Below, in pieces: positions 937 through 41,648 of a stretch of DNA of 64,000 bases. The DNA lies in IMG/VR virus record IMGVR_UViG_3300036715_004471, positions 382,542-446,541 of that record; one strand, given 5' to 3'. Below the pieces are notes generated by a model. It did no database searches and was not told the origin of the DNA. It saw nothing but the letters and a program-made list of their open reading frames with translations. The first letter of the stretch is position 1. Every line of letters starts with the position of its first letter. The position numbers were made by a program, and so were the translations under genes.

Positions 937-1565
937 TTTCGAAATCCTTTTGATTTAGGAGCCAAGTTTCTGAACTCTGACATTTTGTTATTATGGAGTT
1001 CATGGTATTTATCTTTGTACGAATCCCATTCCTCCGAATCATCATTCTTAATCTCTTCCCACAAGGAATTACAAGAAGCATAATCTACAATTTTGGAATG
1101 TTGTGCAATTTGCATACCAAAATCAATTATTCTAAATGAATGGAATAATGACTTCTTAGCAATGTAAACATTCTTATCTTGTTCTACTTCTAACTTCTTT
1201 TTTGCTTTCACCCAAGAATGAGAGGCTTTTTCGGAAATACTTGAACGAAGCTTTTCTTTGTCCAAAGAAAAGCTTATCTTCAATCTATTTTTCAAAAGCA
1301 ATTCTTTTGGCAAAAAGATACATTCTAAAGCGGCAATCTTATGTTGAAAACATTGTGTTAAAAAATCATCTATTGAATAAAGATGAACATTGATATTTCC
1401 ATCATTCGATGTAAGAGAAAATTCTTTAACATCTTTATCCATAACTATAATAAAATCATAATCAGAAGATTCAGAATGTGTTCCATAAACACGTGAGCCA
1501 TAAGAATAAATATTCAAAACTTCTTTCTCGTCGAGCCCAAAACTTTTGATGATTAGGTCTTTCAT
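933..1565 (-). CDS. Pol-beta superfamily nucleotidyltransferase
   Basis: YGSRVYGT..SDYDF (GS-x-DxD) motif. Confidence 0.8.
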   Translation of the reverse strand: MKDLIIKSFGLDEKEVLNIYSYGSRVYGTHSESSDYDFIIVMDKDVKEFSLTSNDGNINVHLYSIDDFLTQCFQHKIAALECIFLPKELLLKNRLKISFSLDKEKLRSSISEKASHSWVKAKKKLEVEQDKNVYIAKKSLFHSFRIIDFGMQIAQHSKIVDYASCNSLWEEIKNDDSEEWDSYKDKYHELHNNKMSEFRNLAPKSKGFRK

Positions 1566-2089
1566 AATATTTCATTGTGAACAGAATGATTTCCAGTCAG
1601 TTTAACGATTGGTTTGATAATTTCGTCCAAAAGTGGTTCGAAAACAATATATTTACCTTTTATATTTTCTTTTTCAAGTAACTCATGCCAACTTAATTTG
1701 AAATCATCAAGAACCGGCTCATCATCAAAATGAACTAAAATATCTTGTCTGCCGGGCATTTTGCTATTCAAATAACATTCACAAAAATTAGGTCCACGTT
1801 TACTTTTACGTTCAGACAATGTTCCTTTACCTTTTGCTTTGGGCGCATTTAGTAAAGGTTCATTCCTTTTTGAATCAAAATCTAAAATTAATTTTCTTTT
1901 AGAATCTGCCTCCTCATAAGAATCAAAAACATAAGTTCTTGCTTTAAGAGTTTTAGAATTTAATTTAATTTTTACTCTAATGCCGACTTTTCTTACAGTT
2001 ACCCGTGATTCATCAACATATGATGTCCATATTTTTTCCATCTCTTCTTTGGAATGAGAGGCATAAATTTGAGACATAACTGACATCAA
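1562..2089 (-). CDS. hypothetical protein (true start probably ~2216, separated by a 1-nt frameshift)
   Basis: Frame stays open to ~2212; AAGGAG-ATG upstream lies 1 nt out of frame. Confidence 0.6.
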   Translation of the reverse strand: MMSVMSQIYASHSKEEMEKIWTSYVDESRVTVRKVGIRVKIKLNSKTLKARTYVFDSYEEADSKRKLILDFDSKRNEPLLNAPKAKGKGTLSERKSKRGPNFCECYLNSKMPGRQDILVHFDDEPVLDDFKLSWHELLEKENIKGKYIVFEPLLDEIIKPIVKLTGNHSVHNEIL

Positions 2090-2262
2090 TTTTTGTTCAG
2101 CATATACTTTTATTCTTGTATCTTTGTTTCCAAAAATTGCTTTGCGTTCTTTACTATTATAATCTGATGAATAATGAAATACCCTACCAATTGCCTGAGT
2201 GTAGTTCTGTGATCATACTCCTTATATATCACAGAACTACAAGAGTTTAATGTCGCGGAGCG

Positions 2263-3651
2263 TTATTTTGTACGTTCTCTGATTCTTTCCAGAGAATCAT
2301 CAATCAGTAGTTCTCCATTTTCATAGACAGTCTTTAACGCCGAGAATTCGTTAGCATTCTCGCTATCGGACAAAGAAATTGTCTGCCAAATTCCGTTTGG
2401 CCATTTTACCAAATCTAATCTACCTGGTTTGGACTTTTTGCCGTGATCGGTGATTGGGTCTTTGAAGACTGGTCTGGTTTTACCATCGACCGTAATAGAT
2501 GAACATTTCATGGCGAATTTAAGAGTATCTCTATTCAAACCCTGAATTAAAGCCCCGCCCATTCCAAATCCTACATTGGTGGCAGAATAGCCATAATTCA
2601 ACAGATTTTCTAGAATTGCCCCAATAGAATGCTCATCAACACCATCGCCCTGAATAACCCTTACATTATTCAAGACTTTATATCCCTTTGTATTGGTAGT
2701 GCTACCAAACTTACTATCCAAAATCTGAACAGTTTTCAACACTACATCAGGGGGATTTCCGCTGTCTGGTCTAATAACCACTGTAGCGCCAGAATCAATT
2801 ACTTCCTGTTTTAACTGCCCACCCCATAATTTCTCGCAGGCATTATACAAATCATAAGAGTCAGAAACACAAGCAACCATCGATCCGGGTTTCGCGAACT
2901 GGTTCAGCATATTTCTATAAGCTTCAGCTTCATTCTCTTTACCCCAACTGGTAATCGAAGAGTGTTCCGATGCAGGGATACTAAATCCTGACATAGGACA
3001 ATTATAGTATTCGTTAGCGCAGAGAACTCCTGCTGCCGTATCTGAACCTAAGAAATTGACTAAATGAGCAGCATCACCAATCATTGCTGATTCCTGACTG
3101 CTATTTCCTCTGGCTCCGAATCCATGCAGCTTGAAGTTAATCTCTGCGGCAGGATCATCAGATGACTTGTTCAAAGCATCAAGAATAATCTGTTTAATTG
3201 TATAGCTGCGTGTGGCTACTGTAATTGGATACCAAATCCTAAGTAACATAGTTTCTAGCCATGAAACAATCCAAAATACGTTTGGATCTGTGGATTCAAT
3301 ACTAACTAGAATGTTGTGACCCGAAACGACTGTTCCTTCCGGAACCGCACGAATTCTAACAGGAAGTTTGCCGCCTAATTCTTTGGCAATATACATCCAG
3401 CCTTCATAGTTGAAAGGCTCTCCGTGAGCAGTCCAAAACTCTCTAGCTCTTTCTACTTCTTCTACGGTTACGCGATGCGATAGATACTCTTTCAGATAAT
3501 ACTGTAAGCCGAAAAATACTGTCTTATCATATTCTCCGCCACGACTTTCGATATAACTAAACATCGAAGTGGTCCCCGGCGGATACTGAAGATAATGCGA
3601 AACCTTGTATGAATCAGTATCAAAGAGATAGCTAAATCTAATTGTTTTCAT
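2263..3651 (-). CDS. nadV: nicotinamide phosphoribosyltransferase (NAMPT/NadV-like)
   Basis: TDSYKVSH, FGARG, SIPASEHS, VSDSYD, IRPDSG, IQGDG, KKSKPG motifs. Confidence 0.93.
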   Translation of the reverse strand: MKTIRFSYLFDTDSYKVSHYLQYPPGTTSMFSYIESRGGEYDKTVFFGLQYYLKEYLSHRVTVEEVERAREFWTAHGEPFNYEGWMYIAKELGGKLPVRIRAVPEGTVVSGHNILVSIESTDPNVFWIVSWLETMLLRIWYPITVATRSYTIKQIILDALNKSSDDPAAEINFKLHGFGARGNSSQESAMIGDAAHLVNFLGSDTAAGVLCANEYYNCPMSGFSIPASEHSSITSWGKENEAEAYRNMLNQFAKPGSMVACVSDSYDLYNACEKLWGGQLKQEVIDSGATVVIRPDSGNPPDVVLKTVQILDSKFGSTTNTKGYKVLNNVRVIQGDGVDEHSIGAILENLLNYGYSATNVGFGMGGALIQGLNRDTLKFAMKCSSITVDGKTRPVFKDPITDHGKKSKPGRLDLVKWPNGIWQTISLSDSENANEFSALKTVYENGELLIDDSLERIRERTK

Positions 3652-21342: not shown

Positions 21343-21409
21343 ATCACCTTACTGATACCTAAGTACCATAGCACTTGGTTAAGGGTTAATTAAAGGTGAG
21401 AAGTCTAGA

Positions 21410-21901
21410 TCAACCGTCTAATTCTTCATAGATCAGATTAAATCCAAACTCCTCATACAAAACATCAAGGCTTTCTTTTACTTCTGGAAATCTAGCCGAA
21501 AGATTCGTGACAGCATTTTTACCATCATGAACTTCATAGAAAATATCTTGAAGAATGTTTCTTCCACAAATTTTTTCCAATCTATCTAATTCAGAAATAA
21601 GAAATTCCAAATCTACCGATTCAGATTCTTCCACCGAAGAATCTTCTTTGATTACAATTGCCGCCGGTACTACCGGAACAACAGGTTTGGAGACAGAATA
21701 TTGGTTTGATTGTGATGCCGCATAATGGAATAAAACATGATATCCACCAATCATTTGTGGAACACTTCCAATGAAATTGATGTCAAATTCATAGACATAA
21801 ACCACAAGTCTATTGTATCGATCAAACTCAACGTCACAGAACCAATCATATTGATCAAGTGTCGACACAAATTGTTGTAGCTCTTCGTTGAGCGAATTCA
21901 T
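21410..21901 (-). CDS. hypothetical protein (start likely at internal MNSL)
   Basis: AAGGA RBS before ATG at 21901. Confidence 0.6.
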   Translation of the reverse strand: MNSLNEELQQFVSTLDQYDWFCDVEFDRYNRLVVYVYEFDINFIGSVPQMIGGYHVLFHYAASQSNQYSVSKPVVPVVPAAIVIKEDSSVEESESVDLEFLISELDRLEKICGRNILQDIFYEVHDGKNAVTNLSARFPEVKESLDVLYEEFGFNLIYEELDG

Positions 21902-25873: not shown

Positions 25874-25911
25874 GTCTAATTATATATCAGACACTCGTGC
25901 AGTTAACCAGT

Positions 25912-32211: not shown

Positions 32212-32589
32212 TTATTGAAACGTTAACATAACTTTTAACTTGTTGACGATCTTATTCATATCGCCATCTAAAAAATCAAAAGCTAATGTTGGCAAATCAT
32301 TAAACTCTGAAGTACAAATATATTTATCTTCATTATCATAAACAACAACCAATACATCGTTATTGTTTAGATACTGAGTAATTTCATACTTTTTATGATT
32401 GAAACGAATTCTAATCATTTCCTCATCTCCGGCAATAAAATCATTGCCGAATTTGAATGCGTAATGTGCATTTCCGAACAGCGCACATTTATAGGTGACA
32501 AGCGTACTTGCTTTGAAATCAACCCGCTCTTTCTTCAAAAGAGCCTGGCAGATGGGGCAGCGCTTGGCATCTAAGTTTTTCATAATCAA
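32212..32589 (-). CDS. Zn-binding hypothetical ending ..MLTFQ
   Basis: Paralog of 32586..32987. Confidence 0.65.
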   Translation of the reverse strand: MIMKNLDAKRCPICQALLKKERVDFKASTLVTYKCALFGNAHYAFKFGNDFIAGDEEMIRIRFNHKKYEITQYLNNNDVLVVVYDNEDKYICTSEFNDLPTLAFDFLDGDMNKIVNKLKVMLTFQ

Positions 32590-32987
32590 CTGAATGTAAA
32601 AACAGTTCTTATTCTATTGATTGCTTTGTCAACATTGAATTTTGAAAAGTCAAAAAGTTCTTTGTCGAGGGTAAAAGCATTGTTCTTAAAACTAAAATTG
32701 ACCCTACCCTCCGCATCCACCTTAAAAACCATAATCTCGGTTTTAACAGATGTTGCTGGCGCAGAGTCATATTTCTTAGTCAACCTATACTTATGTTTAT
32801 CATCGTAGATATTAACTATCTCGGAAAACAATTGAGGAATACCAAAATCGTTTCTCATAATTGAGATAACATAATGATCTAGATCGCTAACGCAACCGTA
32901 TCCTGACTTGCGGTCAATCATATCAATCTGACATTGGCAAGTTGGGCATTTGAGACTATTTAATAGTTTCTTTAACAGGGGATCCAT
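32586..32987 (-). CDS. Zn-binding hypothetical ending ..VFTFS
   Basis: CP.CQ..C..HY..KY..T..FDF shared with neighbour. Confidence 0.65.
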   Translation of the reverse strand: MDPLLKKLLNSLKCPTCQCQIDMIDRKSGYGCVSDLDHYVISIMRNDFGIPQLFSEIVNIYDDKHKYRLTKKYDSAPATSVKTEIMVFKVDAEGRVNFSFKNNAFTLDKELFDFSKFNVDKAINRIRTVFTFS

Positions 32988-33203
32988 TCTCTTATGAATA
33001 TATCTTGTTAATGCCTGTTCATATCATTTCTAGTGATGCGCCAATACACCAAACTTGCAATTTGACGATGTGACATGCCCTCTGTATGAAGTTTTAAGGA
33101 ACGAGCAAGTCTCAATAAGTTTTCTGTCTTTGCTCGTCTCAAATCTAAGCGCAAGACATTTGCATATTTAGCTTTCCATAAATGTCTATGACTTATTTCC
33201 ATA

Positions 33204-33281
33204 TGGCTGAGGAGGTAGGATTCGAACCTACATTACATCGTGATTCAAAGTCACGGATTCTGCCAGTTAAATTACTCCTCA
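33204..33281 (-). tRNA. tRNA-Gln(TTG)
   Basis: Loop CTTTGAA, CCA. Confidence 0.88.
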
Positions 33282-33763
33282 ATATTCGCGTTATCTAATG
33301 CCGAAAAAATGGCAGAATCTTCTGCTGCCAAAATATCACTTTTGCATTTATCTATTAAATCAAACCTTCTCTTCTTTATGTCACTTATTCTGATCGTAGG
33401 ATTAGAATAAATTTCAAAAAGCGGCATCCTTACTCTAACTCCCCTTGGAAAAGAGTTTCGTTTATTAAGCCTACCACTAGAATTTATAACTAGCTCACGA
33501 TGTTTATAAGCACCAACATTGAGTACAATGTTACAAACACCGGGCTCTTTATCATAGATCGGTAAAGCCCCAGAAGGTAATTGATCAATCAGAAAAGTTT
33601 TTCTGGCTATACCTTGATAATCTATTCTGGTTCTTAATGGCTGAATCATTGATTGCGCCAGCCTCATACGACCAGCCGCACTTGACAAGTAACTTCCAAT
33701 AAAACCAGGTTTAGTTCTTTTGTAGAGAGCGCCATCGGATGATATGAGAACAGGATGCTTCAT
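33272..33763 (-). CDS. truncated major-capsid-protein-like protein
   Basis: LAQSMIQPLRTRIDY..RKTFLIDQLPSGALPIYDKEP..PLFEI.SNP.I....IK.RRFDLI resembles large-phage HK97-fold MCPs (from memory; unverified). Confidence 0.55.
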   Translation of the reverse strand: MKHPVLISSDGALYKRTKPGFIGSYLSSAAGRMRLAQSMIQPLRTRIDYQGIARKTFLIDQLPSGALPIYDKEPGVCNIVLNVGAYKHRELVINSSGRLNKRNSFPRGVRVRMPLFEIYSNPTIRISDIKKRRFDLIDKCKSDILAAEDSAIFSALDNANIEE

Positions 33764-33769
33764 GTAGTA

Positions 33770-33973
33770 TCATATATCATCTTTGTTTTCTACTGAATCC
33801 GACCAGGCTAAAATATCTTTCCAGTCAGCCTCACTCATAAAGATTCTGGAAGGCTTGAGCGGTGCATTAAAAATTTTATTGAAAGACCTCTTGAAGGATC
33901 TGGTTACATTACCAACCGGGTCATTTACATTTATTAATTCACCATCTGAATCAATAACAATGGGATGCTTCAT
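33770..33973 (-). CDS. small protein sharing MKHP..I.SDG.L leader with neighbour
   Basis: N-terminal similarity; both starts read GGATGCTTCATGTAG on + strand. Confidence 0.6.
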   Translation of the reverse strand: MKHPIVIDSDGELINVNDPVGNVTRSFKRSFNKIFNAPLKPSRIFMSEADWKDILAWSDSVENKDDI

Positions 33974-34021: not shown

Positions 34022-34097
34022 TGGTGGAGCTAAAGGGAGTCGAACCCTTAACCTCATCGCAGCCAGCGACGCGCTCTCCCAGTTGAGCTATAGCCCC
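34022..34097 (-). tRNA. tRNA-Ala(GGC)
   Basis: G3:U70, loop CTGGCTG, CCA. Confidence 0.92.
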
Positions 34098-34600: not shown

Positions 34601-34676
34601 TGGTGGAGCTGGAGAGATTCGAACTCTCAACTTTTTGCTTGCAAAGCAAACACGCTGCCAATTGCGTCACAGCCCC
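34601..34676 (-). tRNA. tRNA-Ala(TGC)
   Basis: G3:U70, loop TTTGCAA, CCA. Confidence 0.9.
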
Positions 34677-35016
34677 ATAATCCTGCATGTATTTCTCTAT
34701 GACAATTAGAACACAATAGCAAACATTTATCAAGTTCTAATTTTGCTTTTTCTAAACCCCAATATCTCATACTTTGAAAAGTAGGGTCTTTATATTCGGG
34801 ATCTATATGATGAAATTCTAATGCCTCCATACATTTTGAATAATCACATTTTTGACACTTACCACCCTTATACTCGACATATAAAGATTTGTTTGTACGA
34901 CCCCTACTTATTGTATTTGTGTTGTGACAATTTTTGCATAAAGTTAAGCATTTTCTGCCCTGACCTTTATTCATCATTTTGTCAGGATCTGACTCCCCAC
35001 AAATTTTACATTTCAT
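34627..35016 (-). CDS. HNH endonuclease
   Basis: ALEFHHIDP..ELDKC.LLCSNCHRE; runs 50 nt into tRNA-Ala. Confidence 0.88.
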   Translation of the reverse strand: MKCKICGESDPDKMMNKGQGRKCLTLCKNCHNTNTISRGRTNKSLYVEYKGGKCQKCDYSKCMEALEFHHIDPEYKDPTFQSMRYWGLEKAKLELDKCLLLCSNCHREIHAGLWGCDAIGSVFALQAKS

Positions 35017-35018
35017 TT

Positions 35019-35100
35019 TGGTGGATTTGGAGAGAATCGAACTCTCAAACTCTGAAACTCTGAATGCAAATCAGAAATTATCCCATTTAATTACAAGCCC
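35019..35100 (-). tRNA. tRNA-Ala(TGC), atypical (8-nt duplication in variable region)
   Basis: G3:U70, loop TTTGCAT, AAACTCTG tandem repeat, CCA. Confidence 0.65.
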
Positions 35101-35304: not shown

Positions 35305-35389
35305 TGGTGGATCTGGAGGGACTCGAACCCGCGTAGGCTTTCGCCGAGAGCTTAAAAGGCTCTTGTCATTGCCGCTAGACAACAAATCC
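35305..35389 (-). tRNA. tRNA with Lys anticodon (TTT) and long variable arm
   Basis: AGAGC-CTTTTAA-GCTCT, V-arm GGC-GAAA-GCC, CCA. Confidence 0.8.
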
Positions 35390-41234: not shown

Positions 41235-41310
41235 ATCAAAATACGTCAGGAATCGAACCTGAACTGTGGGGTGATTACCCCAATCCTGCCCTTAGACGAC
41301 ATATTTTGAT
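41235..41310 (-). ncRNA. tRNA-like RNA with extended closing stem, 6-nt loop, no CCA
   Basis: ATCAAAATATG/CGTATTTTGAT, TGGGG-TAATCA-CCCCA, TCAGG-TTCGATT-CCTGA. Confidence 0.55.
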
Positions 41311-41563: not shown

Positions 41564-41648
41564 TGGCGGATCTGGAGAGACTCGAACTCTCGATGGGTTT
41601 CCCCGACTGGTTAAGAGCCAGCTGTTATTGCCACTAAACGACAGATCC
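41564..41648 (-). tRNA. tRNA with Lys anticodon (CTT) and long variable arm
   Basis: GCTGG-CTCTTAA-CCAGT, V-arm GGG-GAAA-CCC, G73-CCA. Confidence 0.82.

Follow-up and report, generated by a model that had tools for sequence, protein, structure and literature searches.

The analyzed window is a stretch of 64,000 nucleotides, representing positions 382,542-446,541 of the 446,541-bp virus record IMGVR_UViG_3300036715_004471, an aquatic phage. It possesses 38 tRNA genes, all situated on the minus strand. DNA of this phage or its close kin was found in microbial-mat, lake, sediment and other aquatic metagenomes. Inside the tRNA array, two small ORFs were found on the minus strand. The upstream one, P0002 (33770-33973), encodes 67 amino acids and the downstream one, P0001 (33272-33763), encodes 163 amino acids. 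They lie in the same frame and are separated only by TGA plus six bases. The pair is flanked upstream by tRNA-Ala(GGC) (34022-34097, minus strand) and downstream by tRNA-Gln(UUG) (33204-33281, minus strand). The acceptor stem of tRNA-Gln, at the 5' end of the tRNA gene, holds the last two codons and the stop of P0001. Rfam identified only tRNAs in the region.

To understand the relationship of these ORFs with the major capsid protein (MCP), profile and sequence searches were conducted. P0001 matched PHROG 2522 'major head protein', the phage G gp27-type HK97-fold MCP, at E 3.4e-19 over profile positions 49-176 of 318. The complete MCP of the same genome (P0003, 337 aa) is encoded at genome positions 234,225-235,217, beside a decoration-like gene and an acidic scaffold-like gene and about 181 kb away from the two ORFs, which lie at 416 kb between tRNA genes. 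P0001 aligns to residues 44-181 of this MCP with 39% identity (E 6e-33). It is somewhat closer (46.8% identity) to the 291-aa MCP of the uncultured 485-kb phage LR745208.1, and is 38% identical to gp27 of Bacillus phage G, whose structure is solved (PDB 6WKK). On the basis of the alignment with gp27 and the general features of the HK97 fold, P0001 is composed of a leader followed by the MCP N-arm, probable E-loop and spine helix, with a family-specific insertion before the probable E-loop strand. P0002 alone showed only weak similarity to MCP (PHROG E 0.11, BLASTP E 0.025). However, a profile of its family matched the MCP family by hhalign at E 1e-5, with P0002 residues 28-59 (33797-33892, minus strand) placed on MCP residues 202-233, the conserved motif that follows the spine helix. 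Its homologues in three loci of other phages (L045, L050 and L013) hit MCP 196-234 at E 4e-8, 1e-6 and 5e-6, and a further homologue at E 1e-4. In P0002 this segment, which represents PHROG positions 192-227, is preceded by the leader and followed by an acidic tail. Positions 228-318 of the profile are absent from the locus, so neither protein covers the whole fold of about 280-340 aa. Pfam gave no hit for P0001, P0002, the resident MCP or other family members. Megablast of the region and tblastn of P0002 against GenBank phage records found nothing, and the only matches to P0001 in these records were full-length MCPs. AF2 modelling of P0001 with an 18-row alignment gave a pLDDT of 59.5, too low for a fold search, with only the N-arm and spine helices predicted confidently and no sign of a compact fold on its own. 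A control model of the resident MCP also reached only pLDDT 45.

Both ORFs begin with the same leader module of about 18 residues, predicted to form a strand-turn-strand hairpin (33704-33763 in P0001 and 33914-33973 in P0002, both minus strand, residues 1-20 of each protein). The two leaders share 10 of 19 residues (E 1e-5), and the leader together with the start region occurs only at these two places in the genome. The leader of P0001 is a copy of its own internal segment at residues about 86-106 (33446-33508, minus strand), which aligns to resident MCP residues 110-124, the probable E-loop first strand and tip, and is the source-like copy of the leader. In every lineage, the first 20 or so residues of the N-half protein best matched the same protein at residues about 86-106, with the best match falling at about 86-97. 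The match is lineage-specific. Turn residues are shared by the leader, the internal copy and the partner minigene within one genome but differ between genomes, and the mean score was 30.3 for own-against-own and 18.0 for own-against-other comparison (pairing permutation p = 4.5e-4). Codon comparison suggests episodic gene conversion, as 7 of 8 identical residues in locus L015 and 6 of 8 in locus L016 use the same codon, and this alone could account for the co-variation. In the window lineage the figure is only 2 of 6 and synonymous sites have diverged, so protein-level constraint also acts there. The corresponding strand of the real MCP is unchanged across these phages, so the hairpins are not tracking the MCP.

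The upstream sequence shared by the two ORFs is GATATATG for P0001 (33771-33778, minus strand) and GTTATATG for P0002 (33981-33988, minus strand), each exactly 7 nt before the ATG. It represents a genome-wide start motif, G[AT]TATAT[GAC]. Of its 94 occurrences, 14 are followed after 6-7 nt by an ATG that opens at least 40 codons, against 18 of 1479 for permuted cores, a 12-fold enrichment at gene starts. Of the 16 other ORFs of at least 40 codons following the motif within 5-11 nt, 15 were analyzed by Pfam and seven were identified as homing endonucleases, five HNH, one LAGLIDADG and one GIY-YIG. The motif is also conserved in front of the homologues in five other loci. The real MCP gene has a classical AGGAG ribosome-binding site instead, while the minigenes lack a Shine-Dalgarno sequence. 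A sigma-70 promoter scan found nothing in front of either ORF, the terminator-like hits lie inside coding sequence, and no stem-loop or inverted repeat was found in association with the motif. The motif is inferred to be a promoter giving a leaderless or very short-leader mRNA. In P0001 it overlaps the last two codons and the TGA stop of P0002, which explains the fixed spacing and the shared frame.

Two diverged relatives, L008 and L009, keep both ORFs intact with the same order, spacing, ends and following tRNA-Gln. Nei-Gojobori dN/dS against these relatives was 0.21 for P0001 and 0.08-0.10 for P0002 at dS 0.6-0.75, and neighbouring genes gave similar values. A strain variant from another metagenome differed by substitutions only, without indels, with 8 synonymous against 3 non-synonymous changes in P0001 and 4 against 6 in P0002. 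The latter hints at a weaker constraint, though the numbers are small. Between the window genome and the genome of locus L012, the MCP has dN 0.046 (95% identity) while P0001 has dN 0.60 (41% identity), about 13-fold faster. This rate is similar to that of neighbouring small accessory genes and does not by itself indicate a conflict. L069, considered as the MCP of the L008 phage, was only 69% identical to the resident MCP and was excluded as coming from a different phage.

A word search found short homologues of 129-211 aa (up to 214 aa) with 45-78% identity. All of them carry the leader and most end just after the spine-helix motif. The cluster is syntenic in L008, L009, L012, L013, L015, L016, L045 and L050. 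In L013, L016 and L050 the layout is tRNA-Ala(GGC), zero to five small leader-bearing ORFs, the N-half gene and tRNA-Gln(UUG), while in L012, L015 and L045 the same genes lack the tRNAs but keep the same downstream zinc-ribbon and helix-turn-helix neighbours. L045 has three tagged genes in a row, carrying MCP 196-234, the spine helix 149-179 and the N-half, and L013 has five or six tagged mini-ORFs. In L012 both genes are shorter, the P0002-type copy lacks the MCP-like motif and the P0001-type copy has a premature stop which interrupts residual homology, so the MCP-derived parts are dispensable or decaying in at least one lineage. A different lineage (L096 and L097) has two ORFs of 47-52 aa, which match MCP 121-158 and 150-188, lack the hairpin and share a C-terminal ...LICA tail. 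Altogether, the cluster, usually between tRNA-Ala(GGC) and tRNA-Gln(UUG), was found in at least 10 lineages of huge phages, with one to six tagged minigenes each that carry different MCP pieces, and it sits in many aquatic phages of 0.3-0.5 Mb. A tree of the N-half was a star and did not show the short family as one clade. P0011 grouped with real MCPs in this tree, and both P0011 and the L050 copy are mosaics with stretches almost identical to the resident-type MCP, which is read as gene conversion between the two loci. The real MCP genes of several relatives are split after residue 75 by inserts of 0.8-1.2 kb encoding LAGLIDADG endonucleases, while others lie in overlapping pieces. Rfam found no intron model in the split MCP genes. 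An HNH gene abuts the pair in L008 and L009 and another lies 650 bases away in the window. Endonuclease traffic through the capsid gene is therefore a plausible source of the fragments.

The initial annotation, which described the two ORFs as resembling the N-terminal half and a later segment of a large-phage MCP, with a shared leader and upstream sequence and a position far from structural genes, is confirmed in its observation. Its interpretation is partly supported, in that the descriptive part is right, while the proposed roles as decoys for capsid-sensing defences, assembly modulators or agents of interference with competing phages are guesses at function. The two outcomes it had named as refuting, absence of MCP similarity and neutral decay, were both examined and neither was found. 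The conflict-type readings fit the indirect evidence of fast protein evolution, variable copy number and start signals shared with homing endonucleases, but this is inference only. Two points need correction. The leader it called duplicated is not a simple local duplication but a module copied from the probable E-loop of the paralogue itself and found on every minigene of the family, and the shared upstream sequence is a genome-wide start motif rather than part of a duplicated block.

Taken together, the two ORFs are intact, separately started and selectively maintained minigenes which descend from a diverged paralogue of the HK97-fold MCP of the phage. The homology, intactness, purifying selection, synteny, hairpin co-variation and start motif rest directly on the analysis and are held with high confidence, whereas expression, binding, the structural labels, the mimicry and its target are inferred from sequence alone. 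The minigenes lack most of the A and P domains and so are not expected to form a shell. It is proposed, tentatively for the explanation as a whole, that they act as capsid-protein mimics, soluble pieces that would present MCP surface elements to a partner which normally contacts the MCP. As they evolve fast and vary in number while the MCP is nearly frozen, this partner is more likely an outside, fast-evolving one, such as a host sensor of capsid protein or the assembly of a rival phage, than the own capsid of the phage. MCPs are frequent triggers of bacterial defences (PMC13728456; bioRxiv 10.64898/2026.01.04.697583). On the other hand, no RNA run was found to hold the locus, a complex prediction of P0001 with P0002 scored 0.00, which is not evidence either way, and literature searches for truncated capsid paralogues or capsid decoys in phages found nothing relevant.

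A role as accessory factors of the own head assembly is considered unlikely but ranks next. In this view the minigenes would dock through the probable E-loop-type hairpin onto MCP capsomers, as caps, size or vertex modulators, minor shell components, or titrators of scaffold, protease or chaperone. They retain exactly the elements that make inter-subunit contacts in HK97-fold shells, the hairpins of the window clade resemble the probable E-loop strand of the own MCP, and AF2 suggests that P0001 is not a stable fold by itself. However, a partner of an unchanging MCP should be conserved. The MCP is 85-95% identical across these phages with an unchanged probable E-loop strand, while the minigenes fall to 35-50% identity, their hairpins change completely between lineages, copy number varies from 1 to 6, and the genes sit in the tRNA and endonuclease island without the Shine-Dalgarno sequence of the MCP gene. 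Somewhat more doubtful is an origin as by-products of homing-endonuclease and intron traffic through the MCP gene, in which exon pieces copied into the island persist as hitch-hikers, or as a DNA-level repair template letting the real MCP gene escape cleavage, and the protein itself does not matter. The split MCP genes, the shared start motif, the nearby HNH genes and the mosaic copies favor it, and homing endonucleases drive amplification in phage tRNA clusters (PMC13096335). But the dN/dS values show constraint on the encoded proteins, the frames, leader and C-terminal motif of the P0002 type are kept across lineages whose DNA is saturated, and at 39% protein identity P0001 is too diverged from the own MCP to serve as a recombination template. 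This reading explains where the genes came from better than why they are kept.

Two further readings are very unlikely. Decay of a second capsid gene would fit the partial homology in shuffled order, the later MCP segment lying upstream of the N-half, the end of P0001 at a tRNA gene and the shortened copies in L012. It is largely refuted by the intact ORFs without indels in every sampled relative of the window clade, the dN/dS far below 1, the conserved start motif of each gene and the conservation of the family at 45-50% identity with the same ends. Read-through of the in-frame TGA into one circularly permuted capsid-like protein would fit the common frame in the window, L008 and L009, where TGA plus two codons separate the ORFs, and the in-frame pairs of L012 and L015. 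But the genome gives no sign of another genetic code, the MCP and other genes read cleanly in table 11, no suppressor tRNA is among the 38, the TGA is part of the start motif GATATATG-A of P0001, L013 is out of frame, L016 has no upstream partner, and each ORF has its own ATG and leader.

Among known systems, the phage G gp27-type MCP shares clear sequence homology, but the minigenes cover only parts of it, carry an added N-terminal hairpin, lie outside the head module, evolve about 13 times faster and coexist with a complete MCP. T4 gp24, the vertex protein derived from gp23, is likewise a capsid gene duplicate retained by selection in the same genome, but it is a complete HK97 fold encoded next to gp23 and built into the shell, while the proteins here are fragments of 67-214 aa that would not be expected to complete the fold. 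In genes in pieces made by free-standing homing endonucleases, such as Aeromonas phage Aeh1 NrdA split by mobE, and in the LAGLIDADG-split MCP genes of relatives, each piece also has its own start and endonuclease genes are adjacent or carry the same start motif. Here the pieces do not add up to a whole protein, are in the wrong order, have no endonuclease between them and coexist with an intact MCP gene. The PeSL mobile regulatory cassettes of T4-type phages (PMC2839356, PMC4122927) also place a short repeated element, inferred here to be regulatory and in those cassettes a promoter plus stem-loop terminator, before small variable genes in a hyperplastic region and probably promote shuffling and duplication. 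In the present locus the motif lies 7 nt from the ATG, no stem-loop was found, and the repeat continues into the coding sequence as a protein module conserved at the amino-acid level. SegB-driven segmental amplification (PMC13096335) shares the setting of a tRNA cluster with homing endonucleases and tandem arrays of small units, but is a rapid laboratory amplification of tRNA and anti-defence genes, while the array here is ancient, diverged and protein-coding. Like phage anti-defence sponges and mimics, the minigenes encode small, fast-evolving accessory proteins of variable copy number, derived from a protein sensed by defences such as CapRel and some Avs families (PMC13728456; bioRxiv 10.64898/2026.01.04.697583), though no capsid-fragment decoy has been described in the literature searched.

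In the boldest form of this view, which remains possible but unlikely, huge phages would keep a dedicated and rapidly evolving set of capsid-mimic minigenes, each displaying one MCP surface element on a common tag, an N-terminal E-loop-type hairpin in this lineage or a C-terminal ...LICA tail in another. They would blind host immune sensors that recognise the capsid protein or poison the capsid assembly of co-infecting rivals, forming a new class of counter-defence or interference genes built from the own structural protein of the phage. Capsid proteins are among the most commonly sensed phage molecules, yet no phage gene made of capsid pieces has been described as a working unit in the literature searched. 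The locus represents a conserved, selected and variable-copy family of such pieces in at least ten lineages of giant phages, with a nearly unchanging real capsid gene in the same genomes as a built-in comparison, so that it can be asked whether phages use fragments of their own shell protein as mimics, and against what. It also documents a start signal shared with homing endonuclease genes and the concerted evolution of a short protein module across separate genes. The real capsid genes of this phage group are themselves split by endonuclease-bearing inserts, suggesting how structural-gene fragments are generated and then put to new use.

The real major capsid genes of related phages were found to be split after residue 75 by an insert of 0.8-1.2 kb. 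This organization was observed in five loci of these relatives (L071, L076, L077, L078 and L081), in each of which the match to the major capsid protein (MCP) lies at about 1080-3290. The insert encodes a LAGLIDADG_2 endonuclease (E 7e-14 to 3e-33). In two other loci, L092 and L094, the MCP is present in two or three overlapping pieces. An Rfam search of the interrupted genes identified no intron model in them. In contrast, the MCP gene of the window genome is uninterrupted.

Analysis of the whole genome showed that the motif G[AT]TATAT[GAC], positioned 6-7 nt before an ATG, marks a class of gene starts which have no Shine-Dalgarno sequence. Most of these are HNH, LAGLIDADG or GIY-YIG homing endonuclease genes. 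The motif itself is rarer in the genome than its permuted versions, with 94 occurrences against 139-194. In the window, motif starts were located at 25888, 26575, 26694, 33778, 33988 and 54042. A 129-aa HNH-like ORF (HNH_2, E 0.002) is situated at 34627-35016 on the minus strand, where it overlaps tRNA-Ala(UGC) at 34601-34676 on the same strand. In the related loci L008 and L009, a different HNH gene of 177 aa replaces tRNA-Ala(GGC) next to the minigene pair.

Downstream of tRNA-Gln, the region 32212-33202 on the minus strand contains a 64-aa helix-turn-helix-like ORF and two paralogous zinc-ribbon ORFs of 125 and 133 aa, the latter two with similar C-terminal ends. The same neighbours follow the minigene cluster in the loci L008, L009, L012, L013, L015 and L045. 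The tRNA array also contains some odd predictions at 41237-41307, 35019-35100, 35305-35389 and 41564-41648, all on the minus strand. These include one tRNA call with a two-base anticodon ('???') and tRNA-Ala and tRNA-Lys genes of 82-85 nt, which are unusually long for these types. Many tRNAs of the array are duplicated (Pro x6, Lys x5, Asn x3 and Val x3). IMG/VR classes this 446.5-kb record, as well as the 432.8-kb genome of the relative which carries L012, as 'provirus'. However, the content seen here, comprising a head module, a tRNA island and endonucleases, looks like a free huge-phage genome.

In the 432.8-kb genome which carries L012, three further weak matches to PHROG 2522 (E 0.01-0.04) were found at 21353-21478, 212513-212632 and 199489-199566. 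They fall on different segments of the profile and lie outside the MCP gene and the minigene locus, and they may be chance matches or further fragments. High-GC phage contigs (L079, L080, L084, L086, L062 and L098-L105) encode proteins of 230-360 aa of unrelated sequence, each of which contains a short stretch 50-65% identical to residues 13-74 or 108-141 of P0001, the 163-aa minigene product. These may be fusions of MCP-like segments to other domains, or may simply reflect the search pattern.

The N-half genes of two phages, P0011 at L013:5001-5636 and the copy at L050:2501-3145, carry internal duplications. P0011 has an extra hairpin along with a repeat of the spine-helix start, while the L050 copy shows a restart at MCP residue 63. 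Both also possess stretches nearly identical to the resident-type MCP, which indicates unequal crossing-over and gene conversion. Another huge-phage lineage, represented by a 458-kb contig, has, at both L096:2480-2809 and L097:2483-2812, two adjacent ORFs of 47-52 aa. They match MCP 121-158 and 150-188, lack the hairpin leader and share a C-terminal tail ending in ...LICA. This looks like a parallel version of tagged capsid fragments in a lineage of huge phages distinct from that of the window genome.
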